Positions 44,373-64,000 of a stretch of 64,000 nucleotides of DNA are shown here, piece after piece. The notes beneath the pieces were generated by a model. That model had not been told where the DNA came from, did not search any database, and saw only the letters and a program-made list of their open reading frames with translations. Both the position numbers and the translations under genes were made by a program. The stretch is from Lytechinus pictus (taxonomy: Eukaryota): positions 20,832,001 to 20,896,000 of the forward strand of contig NC_087251.1 in the NCBI RefSeq assembly GCF_037042905.1, written 5' to 3'. Position 1 is the stretch's first letter. Each line of letters starts with the position of its first letter.

Positions 44373-45561
44373 TTGTTATTTGATTTGATTTTGTGTAGAT
44401 GATAGTAATACTTCTTAGTTATACTGTATGTTCTTATTACAGGTTGAGTAACAGGGTGGAGTCCTCCAAATACTGTACACTATCTTATAATGCAGCTACA
44501 GTGTATATAAAATGTTATTTTTTGACATTTATTGACCCACATCCTGTTATCGAGCTATCTCTCTGTCCTTCTTACATACGCACTTGTCTGCGTTGTTGTG
44601 TATCCAAGAAACAGCTTACTGATCTGTTGGAGTAAAGTTCTAAAGGATTCTTCTTCAGTCCAGTGATCACAATACGGGACTGTGTGCTCAGGGCTTTAAG
44701 TCCTTGGGATTGTGTGGCTATTGTTGGAGGTAGAAGAATGAAAGGGGAAGGGGGGAACACAGACAGTTGTAGGGGTAATTATCTATCAATGTACGCACAA
44801 TAACATGTACTTGTAGGCTGCATGCTTGTGCGGTGAACAAATATTGTACATCAAGCCCGGTGATCGAGAGATTGAAGATGGCCCTTTCTAAGTTTCCTAA
44901 TTGATTTTGTACAGTACATCAGCCTCTAATGTGCAACCTCGAATGTGCACAAGGGGATAATTGTTTTTACGTACATGTTACATAAGAAATCAAATTCAAG
45001 ACAAGATACAACTTACATGCTTACATGTAACTCTACTTTTCTATAAACAAAGCCCCAAACTAGTGAACCCAACAAGAGAATTTACGGAAAGCTGTTAAAA
45101 ACAAAAAAGTTTGATAATTTATTTATATTCATACTACATTGTACATGTACATGGCATGTGGGAAAGAAAGTTTTTATGTGGTAAAAAAAAGTAGTCCTGA
45201 GAATATTGATCAGATTTGCCTATCTGTAAATATGGGCTACCTACATGTATTATTTTTATTAAAAACTTTTTTTGCACATTCTTGATAATAATATTTACTT
45301 ACTTTACTCCAAATTAACTTCTGGGATATATTTACACAATATTTCAGCAAAAAAATATTTTCTTTTTTTAAAAGTCATGTTCACCCCCATAAAATACATA
45401 ATAGAAAAAATTGAACAAGCATAATTCGTTGAAAAAATGAACAAAATATGTAAAAGAAAAAAGTTTTGGTATTTTCAAGTTTTGCCTAAAGATGTTTTTA
45501 ATCCTTATGGAATCTACTGTACATTTTAAAGTATAATTTGTAACTTATTTTGATTAAGTGG

Positions 45562-45667
45562 AGAGTTTCTTTATTGATCTGCTCTGTAAAAAATGAAATA
45601 CACTGTGTTTGTTTAGAGTTTCTTTATTGATCTGCTCTGTAAAAAATGAAATACACTGTGTTTGTTT
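45562..45667. repeat. Perfect 53-bp tandem duplication
   Basis: agagtttctttattgatctgctctgtaaaaaatgaaatacactgtgtttgttt x2. Confidence 0.95.
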
Positions 45668-46936
45668 ATTTTATTTTTATCACTAAGTATTAAGTACACA
45701 ACAATTTGTGAGTTTGTGATGTGATTGGTTTCCTCATTTGCATTGCACCTGTCATTTTTTTAAATAAGCTATATTAAAAAGTGCTATGTTTCATTTCTTA
45801 TTTTACAGTCTGAATTTTATGAAATTATCAGTGTCATGCATAGTCAGTGTTATGCTTGTTACATTTTTCTCTATGCAATGAACTTTTGATAAATTGAAAA
45901 GGTCATTATAAATTCTCGAAAGAGCTTATACAAGGACCAGATATTAAATCAGAATGATAATCTGTTTGACTGTTTCAATATGGAACTTTCTGATTCAGGG
46001 TATTTTTTAAAATAGAATTTAAAATTGTACACTATTTGTACATGTAAGTATCAAATATTAAAATTGAAAGATTTTTTTAAATTATGTCTGGCAAAATGGC
46101 GTACTTCTTTATAAGTGAAATGAATATTTCTTGGATGACACTTTCCAGACTTGCATAGTTTGAATTCAGAGTTTTTCAACATATTTCAGAATAAGAACAT
46201 TTTGGGGAATTTTAGGTGATATGTAGACATTTTTTAGCAGTTTTAAATGGCATCACTGGTGTTTGATCAGTTACAATTTATGAGGTGATCAAAAGAAGAA
46301 GTGAAAATGAAGTTGAAAGGAGGTGAAAGTATTCAATGCTTGTGTGTTGGCCTCCAGAAAGAAAGAGGGAGATGGGGTGGTTCTATCTTCCCAGTGCCTT
46401 TCCAAAATGGTGACTGAAAAGGAGGGATTAAACACATAAAGCTTTGCACATATTTCAATTTTATCCATCAAAATGTTTGTAAGTGATGTTAACGTCTGCT
46501 TTTATCCCCTTCATTCTACTTTATCAACAATGCCAAATTAGCATCCAGTGTTAGAAAATGTTGAGGGAGAAATCCATTCAGACCTCAGTGCTCAGCAATT
46601 ATGCAAAAGCAATTAAATTCTAATTACCCTGCCTATTGCAGCTTCGGTTGTCCTGGATGCTTATCTTTAACAAGATTACATCCTTTATCAAAGCATTTTT
46701 AAATTTGAATAAGAAGTCATTGTACTTTCACTTTATCAAGTAATGTACATAACTGCATCCATGATTGATTTGTCTCTTTTCATTTGCTTTTGCAGAATAT
46801 TCACCAATTGGAGTATTAACATGGAAATGACTTGAGGCTTGACTTTTCTCGTGGATAGATGAATGCATGATCAAGCATCATGTAGTTTGTCTTCTAGTGT
46901 TGGCAATCTCCATGTGAGGTCCATGGACACATCTTG

Positions 46937-47830
46937 ATGAATTATAGTGGAACATTCCAACTAAACCGACCTAAAAGAGTAAGACGGCAAACAGTAAGCG
47001 GGGACATGGATGAAAGTGCGGAGGATGACCAAAAGCAAAGGGAGGAGATGGAGGAGGCGTATCGTAAGATGTTGATGGAGCTTGAGAGTGATGATGATGA
47101 GGAGGAAGAAGGGCCAGTCCAAGTGGAGAAGGAAAGGAAGCCTCAACGAGAGGTGAAAGGGGCGGACGATAAGCGTCCACTCTTGAATGAATCGTTGGGT
47201 GGATCATTGGGGATCTCACTCATAGAGAGACATAGCACTCCGCCTCCACCATCCATCGTCGTGATGGAGGATAAACCAGATGTAACTATTACAGTTGATG
47301 AACCCAAACAGGAGCAACAAAATGTTCTCACTGATGATAGAAAGAACTCTTTACCTAATGGTGGTAGGAATTCTCCTCATGGAAGAACTTCACCTAATGG
47401 GAGGAGCTCGCCAAATGGCCCAACCTCACCAACTTCACCTAATGGTAGGGCTTCGCCTATTAATGGGAGAACTTCTCCTCTAAAGAACAACAGGGTTGAA
47501 CCTATTAATGAGAAACAGTTACCTCATGAAATGCATACCAACAAAAACAACAACATCCATTCCTTTCTGACGGACAACACGCAGGCGTTTGAGAAGCCCC
47601 ATCAGACAAGCAATGGGAAGGTTTCGACTCCTGATAGTGGCGTTGATTCGTTGGGTTCGGAGAAGAGATCCTCTGTAAAAACAATTAGTGATTCCAGTGA
47701 GAAATCCAGAAAATCTAGTCATACAAATAAAGTTTTTGTGAGAACATTCAAGCAGAGAGCTAGTCAAGAGAACTTTGCATTGTATGGACTTCTTACTCCT
47801 GCCTTAGTCCTGGTACCAAAGATCGATGGG
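46937..47830 (+). CDS. TPC-like coding exon 1 (long disordered N-terminus)
   Basis: Acceptor tgcag at 46791-46795; ATG 46937; 298 codons; donor GGG|gtaagt phase 0, in frame with the next exon. Confidence 0.8.
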
Positions 47831-50800
47831 GTAAGTTCACTTGATTGAAGGGCATGTTCACTCATTTTTGTTGCTAGCAGATTATTTGTTGCAATAAAAA
47901 TGGTAATAAGAAGGAGGAGTAGACAAAGGAAGAAGGAAATGGGACAAGAATTACAATTACAGTGATAATTACAAGAGTAACAATGTGTGAGAAATTAATA
48001 ATCTCTGAAAGAGTTTTGAAAACTGGTGTTTGATTAGGTTTTGAATATTAGTAGTTAGAGTGTTTATCAGGGCAAACTATCTGTTGTGTGATTCTGCAGC
48101 CAACCAAATAAGCACCAAAAAAAAAAAGCCCACCTCAATCAGAAAAATATTGAAATATAAAAATCAAGTAGTGGTTTTGTCACATGAATGAGGAATGCTT
48201 TTTGCTTTGAATTCCAGTGATGATGTTAATTTCCTCGAGCATGAAATTTATCCAAATTGTGATGCACTCAAGCCAGGTCAGCCAAAAATATTAATGCCTT
48301 GACTGCACTAAGTACAAGAAACAGCAGCTGGAACAATTAAAGGGATGGTCCAGGCTAGAGATGAATAAAAATAAATCAAAATCGGATAACAAATAATGAA
48401 GTAATTGAATTTCAAAGATTTGCATTATTCTGGTGAAACAGTTCTAGGAATGTCTTTATGAATATTCATTAGGTGGGCTGATGATGTCATATCCCCACTT
48501 GTTTTTTTGTATTTTATTCTATGAAATTAGGTTTATTCAAAAATTTTCTACCAAGAACTAAAACATTAGACACATCATTTTTAATACACATGTATGAAAT
48601 AATGAACATTTATGATTTAATGTAATAACATAAGAAAAATAAAAGTGGGGGTGTGACATCATCAGGCCACCTATTATTCATGACGATGTGCATATAACAA
48701 TTTTCACAAATATTGATAAACTTTAAAATTCAATAACATTGTTATTTATTATCCGATTTTGATTAAATTTTCAGCGTTTTGCTTTGTGAATTTTACTGTA
48801 TATATTTAGATATAAATATTTTCAGCCTGGACCATCCCTTTAAGCTGGGGTATAGTACACCTCTGAATAGGCAACTATTAGATGGTGCTGGAAAGATATA
48901 ATATGTATAAGTGCACTTAGATGTATTACATGTAGCTTTGTAAGTGTAAAATCAGTGTTTATTTGTATGTAATTATGTTTATAGTCATGAAAGTAAAAAA
49001 AATATTATTCATCCGGTCCAAAGTTATGTAGAATTATAAATGATAAAACAACAACAACAACTAAACTTACTGTGAAGATAAGTTCTGGAACAATGCAGGA
49101 CGAGGCACCCGGGAGTCTTCAAAATATTCCACCACTGGTCTTACAGACCTCTCCAAAACTTGACACAATCTCACTCAACCACGTAATAATGATGGATGCA
49201 TCCCATCAAAATACTTACCACTGTGGATTTGTCTTCACATTTTAGTTAAGATTTTATTCCACATAATTCTGTTTATGTAAATCAGCATGATGCCCTGACC
49301 GAGACGTTTACTGAGTTGAAGGGAGAAGATCGTGAATTGAAGCTGGCAGCAGCTCATATTGATGATGCAATCAGTGGAAGGGGAAAATATGGCAAAGCTA
49401 GAGCTTTCTTTAAGTCTAAGCAGGGAAGATGGTAAGTAAATAATGTTCTATTTCTATCTTTATTGTATTAACAATACATGAACAGTAACATGTAGTATTG
49501 AGTAGCAACTACTTAGAGACATGTACCTGCTCGATATTAAGACTTGTGATTTTCGATTCCTATCCTTATGATTAAGCCCAGATTCAATGAATTTTTCATG
49601 GCTTTTTATATAAAAAAGAAACATTTCAAACTGTGTTGCTATATTGATTGAAATGGAAAGAGTCTTCAGCATTTTTAAAGCATGTTTAAAAAAGTCAATA
49701 TGCCTTATCGAGCAATCAGCAATGGAGCCAAAAGATCTGTTAGCTGCAAAATTTATAGAATGACTGTGCTAAAGCTAATTAAATCTCTAAATTTTCTGTT
49801 TATAATTTTTCTAAATTAAGGCCTTTTGAAAACTTATCTTGTGAAGATTTAGGAATTGCATATATCAGACAGCTATACAGTGTACAAAGAGTGTACATCG
49901 TGAAATTATTTCCTTATTTTTTTTCTTGAGAATCGGGTTTTATACACAATTTCTCTTGAGGATCTGACTTTTTAATATATGTATTTTATTTTTAAATATA
50001 ACTCATGAAATTTCAGATTGCGCCTTTCACACAACATGAATTTCAGAACCCTGCATTTTATCTGATAACAGGTTTTATCCAACAAGAAATGATTACAATC
50101 AATCAAAATTTTAAAATAAGTAACTGTTAATTAATTCCAAATACCAAACTTGATGACTTTAAACAAAACATGTAAACTGATGATATTCAAAATCATTTAT
50201 CAGTTATGAGTAAACACCATGAATCAATTTACATGTACAGTTTTAAATAAATAAAAAAAAGTTAATGAATAGGGTAATGGCTGTATGTGAACGTTATAGA
50301 ACTTATGAGCATTAAAAAGAATTTAAACAAAAATTATACTGTCCTTTGTTCCCTAATAGCAGTAAAACAACATAACCATTAAATGATAAAAACACCAGAA
50401 ATCAAAAAAATATATCTTTCATTTCTCTCTATCCTTAAACACAGGTGCTTCAAGATGATCAACAACAAGTATTTCAAGTATCTAGTATTGTTAATGGCTA
50501 CAGTTCATCTTATTCTCACCTTTTTTGAACCACCCTCTTCAATGTAAGTTCAAAAGACCTCTTTGTATTACTAATCCACAATTTACAATCTACTTATTTG
50601 TTTATTTATTGTTTTAACCATAGTTTGGACAATATTTTAGAAGTATTCCTATAAAAAAAGTAGGTTACTCATTTCATTTTCATAAAGATATACTGAAAAG
50701 GGTATGATAAATTTGGAATAGAAATGTGTCTAGATTTAAAGGATTTTAAACTTATTTAATAATTGTTGCATCATTGTAGACATCTCACTATCTTTAATTT

Positions 50801-53800
50801 TGCTTGACAAACCTGAAAGGTTCTATGATCAGAAACCTACACCTTGACACGTTAAAATTAAAATTGGGACAGTTGTTTGTCTCCAACGACGCTTTTATGG
50901 AGGTGAGTTAAGCCCAGCAAGGTTTCAAGGATATGACGTGACTAAAACAGCCAAACTTTTGTGACATTTGAAATAAACAAGGTTCTCGACACCTTAGCAA
51001 CCAAAGAACTTGCTAGTCTGGAGTGGGTCAGTGTTTGTTTTAGTATCACTTTATTAACCCACTCTACTAAATCAATTGTGTGAAAGGGCACTTAATATAC
51101 ACCTGCGTTTTATCTTTCTATTCTTATTCAGACTGCCTGGATATTGTAATGATGCAATATGACATAAATTGGTTATTTCACAATTTGTTTTGAATAATGA
51201 TCATCATATCAATTCAATTTTTGTAATGTACACTGTATGTACTTTTTGAAAGAGAGGTTTTTCTTACCCCACCCATGTCATTTTCTTGCCTAATACTGGG
51301 AGTCGCATGGAATATATATAACTTTATGCAAGACAATAAGTACTACAGAAATTACCTATAATGTATTTGCTCTGTAAATATGTCGCGCTTAATATGAGAC
51401 ATCAATGCAGGGAAGTGCTAGTACTTGTAGCATTTCCCTCATTTATGTATTTGGATAATGTATTTACAATTTAATAGTACATTACATGTCAAAACTGAAT
51501 ACTCTTGTCTCGATCACACTGAAGTTTATCTTTAAAATGGATGGACTTTGAGCTTTGGTGGGCATTTAACAAATGTCCAGTATTTAGTCTTTTGATAGGC
51601 CATACCTAAAAGAGACTTCTTGTGTGCAGTAGTATTGATCAAATAGATTACTTTTAGGTATCAAATTTGATATCAAGAAATTGAGTGGCAGTGAGCTTTA
51701 AGGTCACCCACTGCAGTCTTCATTTGACTCTCATGTTGACTTACTTCATTGCTCATTTTTTAATTAGTCCAATGATAGATAATTGTCAATAGATAACAAT
51801 AGTTTATAGTGGAATAATGAATGATTATTTCTTTTGGTATAATTAATATTACTTTGATGTTATCTTAAATGTGTATTTTGGTAAGGTTAAATGCATGAAT
51901 AGTAATGTTATCTAATTGCCTTTATATAAAACTTCCCAAGTCACTCAAATCATAATGATTGATGATAACATTTCCTCTCATACACAGTAAAGCACAAACT
52001 CCCTTTTATAATATGAATACAGTAGAATGAACTATTGTGTTCTAAACTCTAAAGGTTACACTGTGTTTCCCTTTATCTTATTCAGATTTCTTTGTTGTCC
52101 ATTCTGTTTATGAAATAGAAGAAAGCATGTATTGCCATGTGTAAGGTTTAAAATCAGGTGGAATCATTGGATGTCTTTCAAAATCCAATTATTATTTTTT
52201 CATGTACTTCCACCTCCATTAACCAATGAGAATAATTCACTGTCATAAACCTGCCTGGTATTGTCTTGAAATGTACATTCTTTTCAAATTAGCCAGGGGG
52301 TGTTTCATAAAGCTATATATAACTTGCATGTGACTATGGACCATATTCTGATATCTGGTTTAACTTAGACCATGGCCTAACTCTGTGCTATAATTATGGG
52401 AAGCTAAAATATCAAAACTCAGACGAAAGTTTGTTAACATTGTTTGTTTCTTTTGTCTACATAGTACTAGTACTTTGATCTTTCCTTATGCTGCAGTGAT
52501 GAAGAAAACAAATACAGTTATTATTTCATGACATTTATGAATGAATTTGAGTGTCAAATGAGTTGGTAAATTGTACCTCTTCTATTAGAGGTTCATGTCA
52601 CGGTTAGTTATCCATAGTTAAACCACAATTTTAGATCAGATGTGTACAGCTGATGACGTGTTCTTGTATTATTGAAATGTACCCATGTTTTTCCTAGTAT
52701 CTGAATAAAGTGGGACTAAATTTCCTGTAATCCTCATCAAGTTTTGACAAAATTATAAACTTTGAATTCAAATGTTTGTTAACAATGAGAATTTTATCCT
52801 ACAACTCAAAGATTGGGTTTCAACTTTAGCGAATGAGAATCAAAGGATGGTGAATCAGTCTAAGAACGTATTCCAGTCATGCTTAACTTTATCAAATGTC
52901 AGCCTTTAAAACACCCTATCAGCCCTGGGCAAGAAGGCCAGATCCCCCTTTTAGCGAAGTCACAGGCTGATGATAATTATTATGATTCCTCATAATTTAT
53001 TGTATTTATGTTTTTATTAAAAATCAGATGAAATTACAATATTTACAGTTATTCATTGAGGTTAAAAAATCATAAATCACATTTACAAAGTTTAGGAAAA
53101 TGTCAGAAAATAAGGTTACAATACATAATCTGTACCAAACAGTACCTATGTAACTTATAAAATCTGAGTTCATACACATATACATTATCATTAAGCCATC
53201 AGCTATACAGCAAAATCAAAAGGGCGTATAAAGTATACACTTGATATTGCTCTCTGGACATTTCCTCAGAATTGCCCATAAGATGCTTAAAAGGACTTCG
53301 TACAGAATGACCAGATACATGCTTACATGTATGCACTAGTTAACATGAATTTGGCCCCCAAACAATAATAATTTGTCCCTTTATTTTGCAAAATGGAAAT
53401 TTGAAATCAAATGTCCCTATGAATTATTACTACATGCCCATGTATCTTCAGAGTGCATCCATAGTCCATACCTCTTGAATATAAATTTCATATAGCTCAT
53501 TGTTTATAAGAAAACTGTTTATTATGATAGCTAATAGCCTTAATTTGATTACTCATAATTTTAACCGTTCTGTTTATTTTTTGTAGGTCAACATCACCTG
53601 CCATTCTTGCAATAACTCCATTATGTATCTTAGTCTATGCTGCTGATGTAGGGGTTCATATGGGCTTCTTATCTTGGCCTGTATTTTGGTCATTAGATGA
53701 AAACAGATGGATAAGGTGAGAATTAACAACCTCATATTAAAATTGATCATTATTTCAGCAGATTGTCTGAGAATGAATCATAAGTAAATATAATCAATAT

Positions 53801-56800
53801 ATTACTTATTTCTGATACTTCTTTTTATTATAATATTTAGGAAGGAAAAATTTATTTCAGGACATACATGTATTATTCCTTCATATTTTGATTAGAACTG
53901 TTAGTTGTAATCATTTAGAATCACAAGAATTCAACTGTACATAAACATTGTATTTGAAACTGATTGTCAATATATTTATATTACACACATTTGCAAAACT
54001 GCAACAGCCTGCTTTGATAAAAAGGGAGAAAAGTTTGAGCTGTTAACATGTTGCTGATTGACCTGAAATTAATGCAAATGCAAAATACATAATTGCTTTG
54101 CTAATTTGTTAATTACTTATTGTAAGATCTTTGTTATCTCTAGAGCACTTATTTATTCTAATAGATTTGATAGTAATACAAATCTGATTTGTGATTACTA
54201 CTTTTGTAGATATTGATCAGTTTAATAAAATAGAATTGCATTTTGCTGTGTATTGAATGTATTAATTCTGCTTTGTTGTGTTTCAGGAGAGAGCTTGTAT
54301 TCACCTGTATGTATATCATAGACTATGTGATGTTGGTCACACAAACTTTTGTAGATGTGGTAAGTGTTTACTCTTCCTAAATCTCAGAGAAGTCTTCATA
54401 AGTTAACATTATCACCATTTTTCATATTGTCTGAAATCCTAATTGTTGGCTTGGTTGAAGTATGCACGCACCTTAATGTGTAAGATCTTTCAAATCACTT
54501 CAAAATAGTTGTATATAATACTTTTACAGTAATCAGAGGAAGAGTTAACCTTTTAAATGAATACAAATTTAACTTTTATTTTTTTAAATCAAATAACTAC
54601 CTTGGTTTGTTACAGAAAATCTTGCCTTGCAGTTTTGGAGAATGATTTTCTTTTGCATTACAGTATATTAAAAATGATATGAAAATACAGAAATTGTTCA
54701 ATTATGAATTATGATAAAAATGGCCTTTTCTCTTTTTTTTAAGCGTTTGGCTCAACCATTTCGATGTCTGCGGGCAGCCATCATTCTGTGCAAGCTGAAC
54801 AACGTACAACACATCTGGGATGTTGTTATGTCAATTGTTATTAAACTGGGAAAGGTACTTAAATGTGTTTTTTCTTTAAAGACCTTAAAAAGTTTATCTT
54901 AAGCATATGTTGTAATATTGTGATATCTATAAATATATATGTATATATATATATATATATTGCTACATTCGTATCCATTATGGATGAGGGATGGGCTACG
55001 AACATGTGAATAGATGTGCTACTATAGTATGACTCATGAGGATGTTTCTGAAAGCATTTTGCTAGTGATTTCCACAGGTAAATTTTCTTTTATTCAATCA
55101 GATGGCATTACATATTTCAGTGAATTTCATTGACAAGATGTTCCTTGAAATACATTTGCAATTTCTTTGAGTTCCAAGTGTAGTTAATGGTGGCAGCAGT
55201 GGGATTCGAGTCCCAGGTGTGTTTAATGGCGGCAGCGTTGGGATTCAAGTTCCAGGTGTATTTAATGGTGGCAGTGATACGATTCGAGTCCCAGGTTTAT
55301 TCAATGGTGGCAGTGATGGGATTCGAGTCCCAGGTGTATTTAATGGTGGCAGCGGTGGGATTCAAGTTCCAGGTGTATTTAATGGTGGCAGTGATACGAT
55401 TCGAGTCCCAGGTGTATTTAATGGTGGCAGCAGTGGGATTTGAGTCCCAGATGTATTTAATGGTGGCTGCGGTGGGATTAGAGTCCCAGGTGTATTTAAT
55501 GGTGGCAGCGGTAGGATTTGAGTGCCAGGTGTATTTTAATGATGTCAGTGGTGGGATTGGAGTCCCAGGTGTATTTCATGGTGGCAGCGATGGGATTTGA
55601 GTCCCGAATGTATTTAATGGTGGCAGCGGTGGGATTCAAGTCCCAGGTGTATTTCATGCTGACAGCGGTAGGATTTGAGTGCTAGGTTTAGTTAATGGTG
55701 GCAGCGGTGGGATTCGAGTCCCAGGTGTATTTAATGGTGTCAGCGGTGGGATTTGAGACCTAGGTATAGTTAATTGTGTCAGCAGTGGGATTCTAGTACC
55801 AGGTGTGTTTAATGGTTGCAGCGGTGGGATTCGAGTTACAGGTGTATATGGTGTCGGCTGTGGGATTCAGGTCACAGGTGTATTTAATGGTGGCAGCGAT
55901 GCGATTCGAGTTCCAGGTGTATTTAATGGTGGCAGTGGTGGGATTTGAGTCCCAGATGTCTTTCATGGTGGCAGCGGTGGGATTAAAATCCCAGGCGTAT
56001 TTAATGGTGCCAGCAGAGTGATTCAAGTTCCTTGTATATTAAATGGTGGCAGCGGTGAGATTCGAGTCTCAGGTGTATTCAATGGTGGCAGTGTTTTCTA
56101 GAGTGTATATTTTCAGTTTTTAATTGAGTATCAGGCTTATTAGCCAGAAATCTTTTGATGTAGGTGTACAGTACGTAACACTCGGCTGCTTGGACCTTCC
56201 CCAATTATTATCAACAATACTGTTGACATGACTTATTCCTTTTCAAACACGTACATTGGTTGCCTGGTAACTTGTGATTCTTTTAAACCCAAGGCCACTT
56301 CTACATCAAATTGATATGGTTAAAATGAGAAATATTAAGCAAATGTAAATTGGAATTTTATCAGAGCTACATGTATGAATCCAGTACGAAGTGAATTTAC
56401 ATAAAATGGTCAGTATGCAAATGAGAGACACCATGATATTGTATGTATTCTTTTGTATGAAATTACAAACATCAGCTTTTGTCAATTTTATGAAGATGAA
56501 ACTCAATCAAATTTGATTTACATTGATGATAATTTTATGCATCCTTGAGAAGTCTAACTGTGTTTGGAGGAAATATTGAAATGTTTGAAAAGTCACAAAT
56601 TAAATGTAAGGGGAATAATAAGTGTGTAACATCATCAACTCCACCATTTACTTCAGCTGCTAGCTTTAGAGGGGAGGGGGACAAAGTTGATGGAAACTCT
56701 TGTATTCATCAATGATCATTATTATATGTTACTGTATATATTTTATGTAAGTCTCTAGAGGCTCCTGCATAGCAAATACAGTCCAGTTCCTGGTCTGGTC

Positions 56801-59800
56801 AAACAATTTATAACTGGATTTAATTGATTTCTGTATTCCAAAGAGATCTCGCACTCTAAACATTCACTATGACTGGTTTAACCAAATGATTCAGAACAGT
56901 TCTCTCTGCCAGTGAGTTAATATGGCTTCGGATGCTGTTGCTTCAATTGACATTGTACTACACCCCTATATTAAATCTAATGATATTGTATTTTTTATTT
57001 CTATTAGGTATTTGTCATCATTATTGTATTCATCATCTTGTTCTCTGCTATTGGAGTACATCTATACACAGACACATATCACAACATAGAACAAGAATCT
57101 TCAAACTGTACAGGCAACTCAACAAATGTATATGTTGGGTAAGTTTTTGTTCAAAGTTTTAGCCACAGTGATGGAGAAAATATCATTATTACTTTTTCAG
57201 ATTATGAATATTAGTTTTATGTTACCTAACAGAAATAATGTTAAGAATCAATGTTTTGTTTGTTTGCAGTTGTAGTGAAGTGATGTGCCTTGTTTAAAAT
57301 AAATGATAAAAATGATGATAATATACATGTACTGTACTTATCTAGATCATTTCAAAATCTGTCTCTTTGCACTAGAGATGGAATCAAGTGAAATGTGCCT
57401 GAACGCACTTCCTTTTCTCAACATTGGAAACAGATTTTTAAGTAATTCCTTTCATCAATGTACTCAGAGAGAGAGAGTAAAATGAGAACAGGGCACTCCT
57501 GATATTGGATTCATGTCCATTTTATTAGGAATCTTGTCCAAGCTGCACATGTGTTTGTCCATGTGATGGAGCTTCTCCATTAAAAGTTTATTCATGTAGT
57601 ATATTTTTATTTATTTGATTTATTTAATATTCTTATTTTTGTTGTTGTTGTTTGGGGAAGGGGGATCTACATGTAGCTCTTTACAGTCTCCCAAGGTAGT
57701 GTATTGGACATTGTGAGAAGATTGAATACTGTTTAAGTTTAAAGATTACATTGTGATTTGTGTTTCCATTTTTATGCAGAGCCTTTGATCATGTTGGTAT
57801 TACATCTCTGAGGTTATTTGTGCTACTATCTACAGAGAACTATCCAGTAAGTTTTACACCTCATTTTTTTATATAATTACTATTATGTTAACCGATATAT
57901 CAATAATGATATGATAGACTTAAAATGACAGATTCCTAGGTGTATGGTGTTACACTTCGTCTTTTGAACTATAAACTACACCCAGGTAAGTAATGTGCAG
58001 TGATGTAGAAAAGACTTGCAAATGGTAGTGATGGTAGTGATTTTTTTTACCTGACTGCTAAGAAAAGCATGAATGCTTGTAAGCAAGCAACCAGAGGACC
58101 AACAGCTTAAGGTCTTCTCTGAGGGACCTGGTAATGAGGATTAATGCCTTACCAAAGGGCACTAGCACACCAAGTGGGAATCGAACCTGGGTCAACAGAA
58201 TCCAAAACCCCTGTTCTACCGACTGAGCTATAGTGCCTCCCTAAATCAAAGCCGTATGTTTGCAAAAAACTTTCAAAGTGTTTGTATCAGAGATAGATTT
58301 TAATTAGCATAATTTAAGAAGCTTGGGTCCAGATATATTTTTATCAAACTTTCACTGAATGAACATCATGACCACCAATCAACTTTCACTTTTAAACTCA
58401 ACACTAAAAATGCAATATTCTTGTTTTAATTTCTGTGTAGGATCTAATGATTCCAGCATATGCAACAAGCCATTGGAACTTCCTCTACTTCGGAATCTTC
58501 CTTTTTGTTGGTGTTTTCTTTCTCACTGCCATCATGCTAGCTATCATTGTGGATAGCTACTGGTATGTTAAATATGTCTCCACTATCAAACATGACACCC
58601 ACCACCATCATCCTATGAACTATTAAGTAAAAAAAAAAAAAGGATTGTAGACTGAAGAGAGAGATTTCTTACTTCAAGAGGATTTATTTTAACTTGGCAT
58701 TCGTATGAAAGACACTTGTAGTAATAACAATGGGAACTTAGAATTTCAGACATTGTAATTTCTGAATATGGAAGAAATCGGCCTCAAAGAGTGCAACCTT
58801 AATCAACCAGTCAAGTATACTAAAAGTATATCCTTTTTCCTTGCTAGTCAAGGCTTCATCAAAATACAATGCAGGCATTTAAAAGACTTACTGTTCTTGT
58901 ACAAAATTCCTTTGATTATGTTGATATTGACAAGCTATTATTGCCATTTTCTTTTAGTTCTAGTGAAGTCCAAGAAATCCTCGGTGATTATACCTGAAAA
59001 TGCTACCTGGTTCCTTGCCATAATAGAATTCAATGAAAATACAAATTCAATCCTTTCAAAACCTGCATATTCTCAATTATGATATATATTGAACATACCA
59101 AAGAGTTTTTTCCACCCCATCTACCTTACTATATGGTCTTTACATTCTCCATTGCAGGTCATTCGCCAAGAAGCATGTGAAGAAAGAGAGAGCAAGAGAG
59201 AGGGCAGAATTAGCTAAAGCTTGGAATCTTTTGGATCCTCTTGGTCAAGGGAGTCTCCCAAAGGATGATGGGAGATTCTTGAAACTCCTCAGAATTCTCA
59301 AACCACATGTGAGTCTTCATTTTAGTTTTTTATTTGTTTTTATGGGAGAATACCAAAACATGTTCATCATGCTTAGAGCCTATGTCAAACTACTGCTATA
59401 TCTAGGTCCTGCCTTCTATATATTGTCAATATTATAAGTTTTAGTGCATGTAAGAGATGGTTAACATTGCAGTATTTTAGGAAAATATGATTATCTGGTT
59501 GATATATATCCAACACATTAATACATAGATAGAGTTGGGTAATTTGGGATTGGGAATATTTGTGAAAAATGGCTTCAAAGTTGGTAAATTGGAGTGTGGT
59601 AATTATTATGTGAAGAACAGGTGGTGATACGTTCATAAAACACTATTTTTGACAATTATAACTTACCCCTAAAAAAATAATTTTCTAGTGATATACACTT
59701 TTCTATTATATCCACAGCACACAGAAGAGATGAATCTCCAGCTGATTGACTACTTAGATCATAATGATGATGGTCAGATAGACTCATTACAGTGGACTAT

Positions 59801-62800
59801 AAGACTCAATGAAGCTCTCTCATTTGAATTTGAAGAAGATAAATTTTATGATATGGTAAGAATTCTCATTTTACATCACTCTATGCCCAATATAGATTTT
59901 TAGATTAAATTATTTGTAGCTTCTAATTTATACAGTAATCTGTGAACTGATATGTATATTAAAGGTGTAGGGCTAGCATTGCAAAGAATGCTTTAATTTG
60001 TTATGAGTATTTCATAAAAGCTACTGTTAATGGCGTTATTTTTGCACATAGATTTTTTTAAATTAGAAACTGTTTCCACTCACTATAGTATGCTTAGTTT
60101 TTTAGTCATTATTTTATTATGTTTTATAACATAATTATAATCATTTATGTAGTAAATATATCTTTATTTCTAGAACTTTTTGTTTCTCCTTAAAGTATTA
60201 TTGTGTTTTAAGGAAAAATTCAGTTTATTCCTTAAATGTATCTTGTAATAATTATAACAATTAGTTGATCTACACCACTCAAGCCATCCGTAATTAAGTA
60301 GATCCCTCCACTTTCTCAAATTTTCTTAAAATTCAAGTGAATATATGTACCCCTGTTCCTATTCAAGCAGTGCTTGTAAACATTGTGAATACATGTACAC
60401 CGATATTTGTGTAATGTTGACTTTGAGTAATTAGATATCCAGTAATCATGAATATACTGTCTTGACTCAAGAACAATTCATATTGCATATAAATGTGTCT
60501 TGTCAATTTCTGTTTTACAGGATACCAATAGTTCTAAATATGTGTATGCCATCCAGTCATTCAGCCAAAAGATTGTCAGATCAAGCATTTATTCAAAGAT
60601 AGTGCTTGTTCTCATCCTTCTCCACAGGTAAATCAAATATATTTTGCAGTTATTATATTTTCTTACAATATATTTGATGAAGCCACTTTTTTTCTGAAAG
60701 TTGAATTTTATGCCACTGACTTTAATCAATTCCTCACGTTAAAAGATGTACATTTTCAATTATATTGGTTTAGATCTTTTCATGTTTTTTTTAAATTTAT
60801 TGTTTATTTGAAATATGATGATTTAACTGTAATATGTTTACAAAATTTGTATTTGTGTTTTAGGGCTTTAGGGGAATAATTGATGGGGCAACTCTTACTA
60901 AAAGAACACATACAGATAAAAAAAAACCTGATAAACAATAATAAAAAATAATAATATTTTTGTCTTTACAGTATCCTCTTCTGTTTGAAGTGGCATGACA
61001 TGGATGAAATGGCTCGAATGACCATCCAGATCCTTAAGACTACCATTTTATCCATCTTTGCAGTAAGTCTTTCTTTCTTTCATGAGCTTTACCCATATTT
61101 TCAAAGGTGTACCACCAGTTGCTTTTAGATATAAGTTCAGAATGCAAATTACAGAGATGCTTGCTTTTCAGCTTCCATTACATTTGCTCCGGCGACAATT
61201 GCTCTGCTGCACACATTAATGGAATGACCAACTTCAACCTTGGATTTAACACTATACCCTATCCTAAATTTTACCCTAAACCTAACTTAAACCCCTATTT
61301 TAACCCTAACCGCATATCTTAGACAGAATAAAGCCCAGGGGTGGTATTCTGAGATCCATTTTATCTCAGATAAAATAAAATATTTTATCTCCGTTAAAAT
61401 CAGTGAGATAAAATACCCTTAAAATCTCTCCAAATTGGTATTCTGAGAACAATTTTATCTTCATTTTATCTCTGTAAGACACACCTATTGTTTAATCAAT
61501 ATCCAATTAGAAACGCGCTTTTATAGCTCTCTCATATCACTCAACCAATGGAAATCCATTCCACTAGGAGGTGTGGTGAAGGAGTGAGATTGCGTCAATT
61601 TATTGACTTCAATACGCTTGCACTATACGCTTGCGCGTCTTTACAGAGATTTCTTTTTAACAAAAATGGCAATACTCTCATCTTTTTTTCGAAGTCTATA
61701 TCATATCTTTTCAAGCATCATTTCAAAGACAATATTAGTCAAGAAAAGTCTTATGAAATGCTTCCTGATTGTACAGGAATAACTTTAAGGTGGTGTTCTC
61801 AATGAATATATAATTTTTCTTAATTTTCATGCCAAAATTTGGAGTTGATTCACCTAGAAATATTGACGAAATCAACGTCGCGGAGATAAGATAGCCCCTA
61901 CCCTCTTTTAAGTTTATTTTATTTTTTCTTCAAAGTAACTTGGGCGCAAGCACATCACCCGCGTTGCAATGGCCAGATACGCGATGGCTATGTCTACGCA
62001 GCCACTGCTCTGTTGCGTATCATCATAGATACGCAAAATAAAATTTGTACGCAAGATAAAATTTTTAATTTAATCTGTAAGATAAAATGTCATCTCAGAA
62101 TACCAATTTCATTTTAAGAGATAAAATAAAATATTTTAAAGATAAAATGACCTCAGAATACCGCCCCAGAGCAATTGTCGCTGGAGCAAATGTTGTGTCA
62201 CCACTTTCCACAATAGAGATTTATTTGAATGATTTTTAATTCTTGATAAGGTGATGAGTATCTATGTTGTTGTCAACATCTCTATTATTTTCATGCAGCC
62301 TCAATAATTAAGCAGTACAAATACAGGATTTTCTCTCATCTATTTTAACAAGCTTTCACTTTTAATGTATCAATCAAGGACTAAAATCTCTGAGGATTGG
62401 AAAAAAATATTTGAAAATTGCCCATTTGTATTTTTGAATATTGATTAAATTTTGTTGAGAAAATTTACTACACAACACATAATTCAGATGTAATAAAAAT
62501 TTGCAATACAATTTTTTTATCGTTCTGATCATGTTTCACATGTAATTGAAAGCATGCAATAACTGAGACACTGCTTAAAAATTATTTTGAAAGAGACCTT
62601 TAAATAGAAAAATACAGTCGACCTTGGAAAATTGGCTCTAAGGAAATAAAGACAATTTAATGTGTACTTTGTGGTTTTGATTAACAGGTGGAAGTCTTGC
62701 TTCGCATCATGTCAGAAGGAAAGAACCTGATGCAGGTTGTAGAGATCTTGGATATTATCTTGATTGTAATAGGTTTAGCATCCAACATACCTATCTACTT

Positions 62801-64000
62801 CATACCACCCAACTACTATGGTTTATGCAACATTATTTCCGGCATTGCTGTGACATTCCGGTTGGGCTTCAACTCAGCTCAGGTCAGTTTATCCAGAAAA
62901 CGAATTCCCTCAGTTTAACTCTGTATTATTGCATGGAGAATTCACGATTATTAATTTATTGACACGAAGGGCTTACAGCTTTGAATAGTGTATTAATTCA
63001 CTGAACAGATATTTTGATATGTTTTCATGGAATGGGTGGGTTTATAACAATACCAAGATTCCAATATGCCTGTAATGAAATGTGATATTTGAGGGAACAT
63101 GTACCCACAAAGCCTTGAAGGCCTTTCTTTGGGTTCTCTCATTTAATTTCTTATATATATGTTTTTTTAGTATTATATAATGTGATATTCATATACGGTA
63201 TACTTTGAAAGTATCTTTTTATGGAAATTAAATGAATGGAACCAACAAACAATATAAAAAAATTGTCATTTTTTGCAGTCTTCAAGGGCATAAATATTTC
63301 TATATTTGATGGAAACTTCATGAATAGGGATATTTATAGTGATTGTGTACAAGAGGTGAATAAAATGACAACCTTTATCTTTCTAAATTTGTTAACAGAC
63401 CAAGAAAGTTGTGATCCTCTTCTCAACCAAAGTATTTACTGTCATGTTTGATCTGATCATCCTTGTCTTCATCATTATGTAAGTATTATATCCCATAATG
63501 TTAGGGTCATGTGATGTACTGAATAGGCATAGTATTGAACTGAAGCTGAAATGCGTTACAACCACAAGGTAGTCTAAATCTGTTTTCAGGCTTGTAGGTG
63601 TTCAGAAACACAAATAACATATTAGATATGTCAGTGTGTGCATGGGCTATATGAGCTTATTTACACTTTTTCAGAAGCTCTATGCAAAGATTTAAAATCC
63701 CTTTTGTATATTCAATTATGCATTTCCAATTCTTTATTGGAACATTTTGTAAAAGTGAGTGTGGTAGAAATGAGTGATATGATCAATTAGATTACTTTAA
63801 CATATTTTACTCGAATGATTTCTTTAATTTTGTTGTGCAGCTTCCTTGCATTGGCGCTAGGATAGAAGTAAATCATATGTAAATATGAGTGATATATTCA
63901 GTGAGATTCCTTTAATTTGTCTGATTATAATGAGTGATATCATTTTGTTATACAGCTTCTTTGCATCTGTGCTGGGATGGGAGTTGTTTTATGGTATTAC
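46937..64000 (+). CDS. Two-pore channel (TPC/TPCN)-family cation channel, divergent; 16 coding exons visible, 3' end outside the window
   Basis: Spliced translation shows TPC hallmarks in order: LAAAHIDDAISGR (pre-S1), LTFFEPP (IS1 end), RLAQPFRCLR (IS4), LFVLLSTENYPDLMIPAY (pore I), LAIIVDSY (IS6), EF-hand linker, then a second 6TM repeat up to FFASVLGWELFYG (IIS5). All introns are GT-AG with matching phases. Confidence 0.9.
48341..48839. mobile_element. Related TTAA MITE subfamily
   Basis: TTAA|AGGGATGGTCCAGGCT..AGCCTGGACCATCCCT|TTAA; perfect 16-bp TIR. Confidence 0.88.
49286..49431 (+). CDS. TPC-like exon 2
   Basis: atcag|HDALTETFTELKGEDRELKLAAAHIDDAISGRGKYGKARAFFKSKQGR|gtaagt. Confidence 0.88.
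50445..50543 (+). CDS. TPC-like exon 3 (IS1)
   Basis: acag|WCFKMINNKYFKYLVLLMATVHLILTFFEPPSS|gtaagt. Confidence 0.9.
53587..53715 (+). CDS. TPC-like exon 4 (IS2)
   Basis: tgtag|MSTSPAILAITPLCILVYAADVGVHMGFLSWPVFWSLDENRWI|gtgaga. Confidence 0.85.
54287..54359 (+). CDS. TPC-like exon 5 (IS3)
   Basis: ttcag|RRELVFTCMYIIDYVMLVTQTFVDV|gtaagt. Confidence 0.85.
54744..54854 (+). CDS. TPC-like exon 6 (IS4, S4-S5 linker)
   Basis: ttaag|RLAQPFRCLRAAIILCKLNNVQHIWDVVMSIVIKLGK|gtactt. Confidence 0.87.
55168..56092 (+). repeat. 39-bp minisatellite, about 24 copies; unit contains the reverse complement of the mature tRNA-Leu 3' end
   Basis: Consensus GTGTATTTAA-TGGTGGCAGCGGTGGGATTCGA-GTCCCAG repeated with 39-nt period; lies in the intron after TPC-like exon 6. 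Confidence 0.95.
57008..57138 (+). CDS. TPC-like exon 7 (IS5, turret)
   Basis: attag|VFVIIIVFIILFSAIGVHLYTDTYHNIEQESSNCTGNSTNVYV|gtaagt; NCT and NST glycosylation sequons. Confidence 0.88.
57780..57846 (+). CDS. TPC-like exon 8 (pore helix/filter I)
   Basis: tgcag|GAFDHVGITSLRLFVLLSTENYP|gtaagt. Confidence 0.92.
58021..58241 (-). mobile_element. tRNA-derived SINE (different family)
   Basis: On the - strand: tagctcagtcggtagaaca..ggttcgattccc head followed by non-tRNA body and simple-repeat tail. Confidence 0.75.
58441..58562 (+). CDS. TPC-like exon 9 (IS6)
   Basis: tgtag|DLMIPAYATSHWNFLYFGIFLFVGVFFLTAIMLAIIVDSY|gtatgt. Confidence 0.92.
59158..59308 (+). CDS. TPC-like exon 10 (linker, EF-hand 1-like)
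   Basis: tgcag|WSFAKKHVKKERARERAELAKAWNLLDPLGQGSLPKDDGRFLKLLRILKPH|gtgagt. Confidence 0.9.
59718..59855 (+). CDS. TPC-like exon 11 (EF-hand 2)
   Basis: cacag|HTEEMNLQLIDYLDHNDDGQIDSLQWTIRLNEALSFEFEEDKFYDM|gtaaga. Confidence 0.9.
60521..60627 (+). CDS. TPC-like exon 12 (IIS1)
   Basis: tacag|DTNSSKYVYAIQSFSQKIVRSSIYSKIVLVLILLH|gtaaat. Confidence 0.87.
60972..61062 (+). CDS. TPC-like exon 13
   Basis: tacag|SILFCLKWHDMDEMARMTIQILKTTILSIFA|gtaagt. Confidence 0.85.
61180..62193. mobile_element. Outer MITE with telomere-like (ccctaa) internal repeats, interrupted by 61339-62166
   Basis: TIR acatttgctccggcgacaattgctc / gagcaattgtcgctggagcaaatgt. Confidence 0.8.
61339..62166. mobile_element. MITE with CAG TSD nested in another MITE
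   Basis: cag|GGGTGGTATTCTGAG..CTCAGAATACCGCCC|cag; internal ttttatct/agataaaa arrays. Confidence 0.85.
62688..62882 (+). CDS. TPC-like exon 14 (IIS2-IIS4)
   Basis: aacag|VEVLLRIMSEGKNLMQVVEILDIILIVIGLASNIPIYFIPPNYYGLCNIISGIAVTFRLGFNSAQ|gtcagt. Confidence 0.87.
63399..63478 (+). CDS. TPC-like exon 15
   Basis: aacag|TKKVVILFSTKVFTVMFDLIILVFII|gtaagt. Confidence 0.83.
63956..64000 (+). CDS. TPC-like exon 16 (IIS5, truncated by window end)
   Basis: tacag|IFFASVLGWELFYGI.., matching the S5 consensus FAxxGxELF. Confidence 0.85.

Follow-up and report, generated by a model that had tools for sequence, protein, structure and literature searches.

Reviews hold that animals have three two-pore channel (TPC) genes, and that a TPC-related branch with filters like those of CaV channels is confined to protists (PMC12839299, PMC7312350). 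The gene LOC129264776 of the sea urchin Lytechinus pictus raises the question of whether animals possess a further kind of TPC. It begins within a stretch of 64,000 nucleotides (assembly GCF_037042905.1, contig NC_087251.1, positions 20,832,001 to 20,896,000 of the forward strand; hereafter the window, whose own numbering we use throughout) and is labelled 'uncharacterized protein' in RefSeq. A first-pass annotation of this DNA had read a glutamate in the first selectivity filter and proposed an additional TPC-related paralogue, neither TPC1, TPC2 nor TPC3, that may be Ca2+-permeable. Here we argue that LOC129264776 belongs to a distinct, ancient animal TPC-fold family that is likely Ca2+-permeable and whose gating would not be TPC-like. 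We regard this as the best explanation overall, with a probability of roughly 0.6.

Results

An intact gene with a glutamate in filter I

The first 16 coding exons of LOC129264776 lie on the plus strand, from position 46937 to the window end (64000). They were mapped by tblastn with the Diadema antillarum orthologue as guide, followed by splice-site optimisation, and were later re-translated. All 16 exons have AG/GT borders, none contains a stop codon, and the spliced product is 100% identical to the RefSeq isoforms X1-X4 over 836 residues. Its identity to the L. variegatus orthologue is 97.7%, and to S. purpuratus LOC115929441 it is 85%. That is, LOC129264776 is an intact gene, and both a 300-residue N-terminal open reading frame (46937-47830) and an exon with a weakly charged IIS4, the S4 helix of repeat II (62688-62882), are parts of it. 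Codons 1-859 of 1362 fall inside the window; everything from pore II onwards, with IIS6, the SH3 domain and the C-terminal motifs, falls past 64000 and was taken from the identical RefSeq protein (P0161).

Pore I is encoded by exon 8 (57780-57846, plus strand; AG acceptor at 57778-57779, GT donor at 57847), which comprises the end of the turret, pore helix I and selectivity filter I (S-T-E-N-Y-P) and translates as ..AFDHVGITSLRLFVLLSTENYP. Direct reading places T-E-N at 57832-57840, with the GAG codon at 57835-57837; this codon specifies Glu547, the counterpart of the filter Glu in CaV and of the Ala in TPCs. After an intron of 594 bases follows exon 9 (58441-58562, plus strand), translated as DLMIPAYATSHWNFLYFGIFLFVGVFFLTAIMLAIIVDSYW. 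It starts with D-L-M-I-P-A-Y and continues with the second pore helix and IS6 (..FFLTAIMLAIIVDSYW), in which Ala580 (GCC, 58528-58530) occupies the usual S6 Asn position. The first-pass annotation had given the S-T-E-N pore and its GAG codon, which direct reading and re-translation bear out in every detail, and it had also noted correctly that IS6 lacks the usual Asn. The filters it gave for comparison, TTAN in animals and TTSN in plants, agree with the sequences of solved structures: mouse TPC1 reads TTANFPD, human TPC2 TTANNPD and Arabidopsis TPC1 (AtTPC1) TTSNNPD, and the IS6 Asn is present in all three. In pore II, mouse TPC1 and human TPC2 read V-V-N-N-W, and AtTPC1 reads V-M-G-N-W.

Distribution and domain layout of the family

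Homologue searches recovered a single family with members in echinoderms (all five classes), hemichordates, amphioxus, tunicates, an annelid (Owenia), nemerteans, anthozoan, hydrozoan and scyphozoan cnidarians and homoscleromorph sponges; several transcriptome or environmental sequences belong to it as well. A whole-library search with the 40-residue IS6 exon found 20 proteins, of which the complete ones are mostly 1000-1450 residues long. The homologue searches, which use a word prefilter and whose next matches had E = 1e-17 or weaker, gave no member from vertebrates, arthropods or nematodes and none from a named mollusc. This result is suggestive of family loss in vertebrates, arthropods, nematodes and molluscs, and because of the prefilter it is not exhaustive. 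A search with the family profile gave only family members and three odd distant proteins, the word prefilter being saturated. Automatic database names of members are diverse ('uncharacterized', 'two pore calcium channel protein 1-like', 'sodium channel protein type 11', 'P/Q-type calcium channel' and 'SH3 domain-containing protein'). In a full-text literature search we found no description of an animal two-repeat channel with an SH3 domain, and the gene identifiers were unmentioned.

The proteins consist of a disordered N-terminus, two Ion_trans repeats joined by a linker that resembles an EF-hand pair, and a long C-terminus. Pfam detected two Ion_trans stretches in P0021 and in five other members, that is, the two tandem six-helix repeats typical of the TPC superfamily; individual exons gave only weak Ion_trans matches. 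In addition, SH3_1/SH3_2 was detected near residue 1100, with one C-terminal SH3 domain per protein. The best matches of this domain are the SH3 domains of p47phox, intersectin and myosin-I. It is of the generic p47phox/intersectin type, and a CaV-beta-like SH3 domain, also considered, was rejected on these matches. A basic stretch stands directly ahead of the SH3 domain in P0161 and its relatives, and on its C-terminal side two motifs, G.WR..I.GD.TVMN..E...LNKI and GEMP.W..KF, recur in members from sponges through to urchins.

Pore I reads x-x-E-N-[YF]-P in all 42 family members in which it is readable, and the Glu, the next Asn and the Pro are invariant columns in a core alignment of 23 sequences from sponges to echinoderms. 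A sequencing error at the Glu is therefore unlikely, and since the spliced product is identical to RefSeq, the Glu is no splicing error either; the possibility raised in the first-pass annotation, that this residue is an error or not conserved, is thereby answered. Across the family, filter I is (S/T)-T-E-N. Pore II is T-T-S-N-W in 30 of 38 sequences and a near variant in the remainder, and the canonical T-T-A-N / V-V-N-N-W pattern is not found. None of 39 sequences has Asn at the IS6 position. A joint alignment puts the pore-I Glu exactly in register with the CaV selectivity Glu (repeats I and III) and with the Ala of TPCs; in pore II, the Ser of the family shares its column with the Glu of CaV and with the leading Asn of the N-N pair in TPCs.

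Some gene models depart from the usual pore II. The Clavelina model P0039 has an aberrant sequence there (SSKWW), and Apostichopus is represented by two differing models (P0005 and P0023), one of them without a readable pore II. These oddities are probably annotation or assembly errors, not biology.

Placement among two-repeat channels

For comparison with canonical TPCs, a search was seeded with a distant TTAN-type protist TPC (P0053). It returned one named animal TPC1 and about 15 TTAN/VVNNW TPCs, and no named TPC2, TPC3 or plant TPC1 was among its matches. TTAN / VVNNW filters together with the IS6 Asn occur in the chiton TPC1 as well as in about 15 protist TPCs.

We then placed the family in a two-repeat tree of 51 rows, for which four-domain channels, split into halves, supplied the outgroup (quick search; support by the Shimodaira-Hasegawa-like approximate likelihood ratio test, SH-aLRT, only). 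The family was monophyletic (SH-aLRT 100) on a stem of length 1.71, with the TTAN-type TPCs as its sister group (94), and its separation from the four-domain halves had a support of 100. Within the family, the order of branches tracks animal phylogeny, apparently as expected of single-copy orthologues inherited from the first animals. Two environmental proteins, P0137 and P0139, are distant two-repeat channels whose branches are very long and lie close to the canonical TPCs; they have other filter motifs, T-G-V-N-F-P in one case and V-V-N-D-W without a recognisable pore-I N-x-P motif in the other.

Since outgroup rooting is an assumption, we built a single-repeat tree whose repeat-I-type and repeat-II-type sequences serve as each other's root. 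Here the first repeat of the family grouped with the first repeat of TPCs (100) and the second with the second (89), the family stood outside the canonical TPC clade in both halves (93 and 99), and the four-domain repeats fell outside both. A constraint joining the family to the sole bona fide animal TPC1 cost 20.9 log-likelihood units and was rejected (approximately unbiased (AU) test, p = 0.026). The family profile scored 161 bits against zebrafish TPC3, 160 against AtTPC1 and 144 against mouse TPC1, whereas in a calibration with the chiton TPC1 the score was 766 bits for mouse TPC1 and 180-200 bits for TPC2, TPC3 and AtTPC1.

Judged by these sequence comparisons, the family is a distinct, ancient and apparently single-copy animal TPC-fold lineage, sister to the canonical TPCs. 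The earlier proposal of an additional paralogue that is not TPC1-3 is supported by this fully supported, SH3-bearing two-domain clade, which stands apart from all TTAN/VVNNW TPCs in the comparison, and by the AU test. It can also be widened from an echinoderm oddity to a family found across animals, which has an invariant filter of its own as well as its own linker and C-terminal module.

Predicted structure and comparison with known channels

In an AlphaFold2 (AF2) model of a family protein (predicted local distance difference test score 76.6, predicted template modelling score 0.69), T-E-N and T-S-N form three-residue breaks between both pore helices of each repeat. All of the Foldseek ranks 1-18 were TPCs, with template modelling (TM) scores of 0.57-0.71. 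AtTPC1 (7fhn) and human TPC2 matched best at 0.71, mouse TPC1 reached 0.69, and TPC3 was matched as well. NaV and CaV structures came below the TPCs at about 0.5, and identity across all structural matches was 13-19%. The closest AlphaFold-DB clusters, including a Monosiga protein, had identities of at most 18%, and the protein-language-model neighbours were plant TPC1 clusters with EF-hands.

The family shares with canonical TPC1/2/3 the two tandem six-helix repeats, each of which clusters with its TPC counterpart, the ..N-[YF]-P-[DE] frame of pore I and a conserved pore-helix Leu. Unlike canonical TPCs, it has T-E-N instead of T-A-N and T-S-N-W instead of V-N-N-W, lacks the IS6 Asn and the basic S4-S5 residues of TPC1, retains one Arg in IIS4 and carries an SH3 domain; its members are 1.5-2 times longer, at identities of 15-19%. 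AtTPC1, the plant vacuolar SV (slow vacuolar) channel, is the top structural match and also the top sequence match for the IS6 exon. Its linker contains an EF-hand pair, which the EF-hand-like linker of the family, sub-threshold in Pfam, may match. Like the family, AtTPC1 has no basic residues of the type that binds phosphatidylinositol 3,5-bisphosphate (PI(3,5)P2), and it has an acidic residue after ..N-x-P. Unlike the family, AtTPC1 has T-S-N / M-G-N filters, the IS6 Asn and a charged, voltage-sensing IIS4, and it has no SH3 domain. CaV, NaV and NALCN channels resemble the family in the aligned selectivity Glu of CaV repeats I and III and in profile scores per repeat pair, which are similar to those of TPCs. 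They differ from it by having four repeats instead of two, a Glu in CaV repeat II where the family has Ser, and the lower TM score.

Features related to gating

IIS4 is the voltage sensor helix in TPC1, TPC3 and plant TPC1. In the family it contains a single Arg (62859-62861 in L. pictus), whose counterpart in the S4 of TPC and CaV channels is the third basic position, and the charged IIS4 sensor of the plant type is not present. With one Arg only, repeat II would have no voltage sensor of the TPC1 or plant TPC1 type. In repeat I, IS2 and IS3 have aromatic/acidic residues at the positions that correspond to those of CaV S2/S3. The S4-S5 segment of this repeat is ..K-LNNVQHIWDV.. in the family versus ..SVRRFARQI.. 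in the chiton TPC1, so that it lacks the polybasic S4-S5 cluster on which the PI(3,5)P2 site of TPCs is centred (PMC13578460).

The linker between both repeats is modelled by AF2 as helix-loop-strand-helix, twice. Its second EF-hand-like loop follows the consensus D-x-[DN]-x-D-G-x-[IV]-D-x-x-[ED] in most species, position 12 being Glu or Asp in Diadema, sea stars, crinoids, a sea cucumber, amphioxus, Ciona, Owenia and nemerteans.

Remaining exons and intronic features

All further exons lie on the plus strand. Exon 1 (46937-47830) holds the start ATG and a long low-complexity N-terminal extension; it was located by tblastn with the Diadema orthologue, and its first 30 residues equal those of RefSeq P0161. 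The extension includes an acidic dileucine-like DKRPLL (residues 78-83; about 47168-47185), present in echinoids and one brittle star only and not family-wide, which could be a lineage-specific endolysosomal sorting signal. Exon 2 (49286-49431) encodes a conserved cytosolic helix ahead of IS1 (..RELKLAAAHIDDA..GRGKYGKARA..) with several invariant columns in the 23-sequence alignment. It is followed by exon 3 (50445-50543) with IS1, exon 4 (53587-53715) with IS2, whose Tyr and Asp align with the aromatic and acidic residues of CaV S2, and exon 5 (54287-54359) with IS3. Exon 6 (54744-54854) comprises IS4 (R..Q..R..R......K) and the S4-S5 linker without the RR..R residues of the aligned chiton TPC1. 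IS5 and the turret are encoded by exon 7 (57008-57138; Pfam Ion_trans positions 132-166).

Downstream of IS6, exon 10 (59158-59308) provides a basic post-IS6 helix (KKHVKKERARERAEL) and a first, degenerate EF-hand-like loop, and exon 11 (59718-59855) the second such loop, DHNDDGQIDSLQ, at 59757-59792. Repeat II begins with exon 12 (60521-60627, beginning of IIS1) and continues through exon 13 (60972-61062, IIS1-IIS2), exon 14 (62688-62882, IIS2-IIS4, including the lone IIS4 Arg) and exon 15 (63399-63478, IIS4-S5 linker and beginning of IIS5). Exon 16 (63956-64000) belongs to IIS5 and is interrupted by the window end.

Two introns contain additional features. Between exons 6 and 7, positions 55168-56092 form a long tandem repeat with GVFNGGS-like units in one frame. 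On the minus strand at 58150-58250, within the intron that separates exons 8 and 9, a stretch resembling a tRNA carries box A (TAGCTCAGTCGGTAGA) and box B (GGTTCGATTCC). ARAGORN called no tRNA in 45000-64000, this stretch included; it is probably the head of a tRNA-derived short interspersed nuclear element.

Discussion

If the family protein dimerises as TPCs do, its filter would present a Glu/Ser/Glu/Ser ring, with an Asn ring one position on, and the pair of glutamates facing each other where CaV channels have their EEEE locus would create a divalent-binding site. Because of these facing glutamates, the channel is most likely Ca2+-permeable, or at least would interact strongly and with high affinity with Ca2+, unlike a TPC2-like Na+ channel; the Na+ selectivity of which canonical TPC filters are capable is not expected of it. 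That the pore-I Glu is itself the cause of Ca2+ permeability we propose more tentatively, at slightly under even odds, as the argument rests on one filter position, in domain I only. Gating would probably not be TPC-like, with one Arg in IIS4 and the basic S4-S5 residues of TPC1 gone. The EF-hand-like pair of the linker suggests control by cytosolic Ca2+, comparable to plant TPC1, and the SH3 domain suggests anchoring to proline-rich partners. Taken together, our guess would be a Ca2+-regulated, weakly voltage-dependent channel that is scaffolded via SH3, although each of these gating details is more doubtful than the role of the Glu in Ca2+ permeability.

Several points weigh against this picture. 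The trees comprise no canonical TPC2, TPC3 or plant TPC1, which were compared through PDB searches only, and both the quick tree search with SH-aLRT as sole support and the long family stem set limits on the placement. Acidic residues occupy only two of the four filter positions of the presumed dimer, and the CaV pattern of an acidic residue in every repeat (EEEE/EEDD) is not found, as repeat I has Glu and repeat II Ser or Asn. Bacterial NaV channels have four Glu and are yet Na+-selective, so that a Glu alone does not predict Ca2+ selectivity. In the linker, EF-hand_7 scored 18 bits, below the Pfam cut-off of 30, and position 12 of the second loop (59757-59792) is Gln in Lytechinus and Strongylocentrotus, which may mean weaker Ca2+ binding in both echinoid genera. 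Finally, IS4 keeps two nearly invariant arginines across the family, and voltage dependence via repeat I is therefore possible.

The strongest alternative accepts the separate family and assigns its Glu pair to divalent block or pH sensing in a non-selective or monovalent cation channel. We consider this possible, if somewhat doubtful. An acidic residue in domain I only, with Ser or Asn in domain II, would fit such a channel, as would the Glu rings that also occur in Na+-selective bacterial channels. Plant TPC1 provides a precedent: it is non-selective and blocked by luminal Ca2+ at acidic pore-mouth residues, and D269 of AtTPC1, the Asp of ..NNPD, coordinates luminal Ca2+ (PMC8508871). But the Glu of the family stands exactly at the CaV selectivity position and is invariant across the sampled animal phyla, which argues for a central role in permeation, and we prefer the Ca2+-permeable channel.

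A second alternative, unlikely in our view and still to be taken seriously, is that the family represents the animal orthologue of the protist 'TPCR' clade and hence a kind that is already named. According to summaries of Rahman et al. 2014, TPCRs form a separate TPC branch with a CaV-like filter in unicellular organisms, among them choanoflagellates, Capsaspora and Thecamonas. This matches the remark of the first-pass annotation that acidic-filter TPC-related proteins have been noted mainly in unicellular relatives of animals. Compared by this description, TPCRs share with the family an acidic filter and a branch outside TPC1-3, just as pore I and the trees place the family outside canonical TPCs. 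However, no named choanoflagellate or filasterean protein appeared in the homologue searches with family queries, and the nearest AlphaFold-DB clusters, with one Monosiga protein among them, had identities of 18% or less. TPCRs are reported from unicellular organisms only, and according to a 2026 review animals lack them. If the family were TPCR, its kind would have a name, and only the statement of its absence from animals would be wrong.

It is very improbable that the gene is simply a TPC1, 2 or 3 orthologue whose filter changed in one lineage. The name 'two pore calcium channel protein 1-like' of some members would speak for it, but the separate, fully supported clade, the rejected grouping with animal TPC1 and the near-equal profile scores of 144-161 bits against TPC1, TPC3 and AtTPC1, set against the 766 bits between chiton and mouse TPC1, speak against it. 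The SH3 domain, the length of 1000-1450 residues and the differing pore II are also unlike TPC1-3, and TPC1-3 are reported as separate sea urchin genes, with a 2026 review giving three TPCN genes for echinoderms. We therefore rejected a canonical orthologue. That the locus is a pseudogene or an annotation artefact, or represents half of a CaV/NaV gene with four domains, is hardly credible: names assigned automatically to some members, among them 'sodium channel protein type 11' and 'P/Q-type calcium channel', would point that way, but the 16 clean exons identical to RefSeq and the strong cross-phylum conservation speak against decay, full-length members have exactly two Ion_trans repeats plus SH3, and four-domain halves split off with a support of 100.

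What could a distinct TPC-fold family mean for its hosts? The first-pass annotation expected relevance for Ca2+ release from acidic stores if the host were an echinoderm. The host, L. pictus, is one; for the relevance itself we found no support, and the basic S4-S5 residues of TPC1 are absent. As a long shot, one could imagine that non-vertebrate, non-ecdysozoan animals keep a fourth TPC-fold lineage with an ancestral CaV-like acidic filter, Ca2+-conducting, controlled by Ca2+ through its EF-hands and tethered by SH3 to cortical or vesicular scaffolds. In echinoderms, such a channel could underlie a Ca2+ current related to fertilisation or to NAADP (nicotinic acid adenine dinucleotide phosphate) that TPC1-3 do not explain.

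On the preferred reading, a further conserved channel with the TPC fold exists beyond TPC1-3 in sea urchins, which are the classic model for NAADP, and in many other marine animals. That the searches gave no member from vertebrates, arthropods, nematodes or a named mollusc would explain why the family escaped study. With a Glu at the CaV position, an EF-hand-like linker and an SH3 domain in its predicted protein, it is a candidate for a new Ca2+-conducting channel. For two-repeat channels it offers a natural test of the way in which the chemistry of the filter determines selectivity for Na+ or Ca2+, and it bears on the origin of the filters of four-domain channels. The family is thus a candidate addition to the Ca2+-signalling toolkit of eggs, sperm and embryos.

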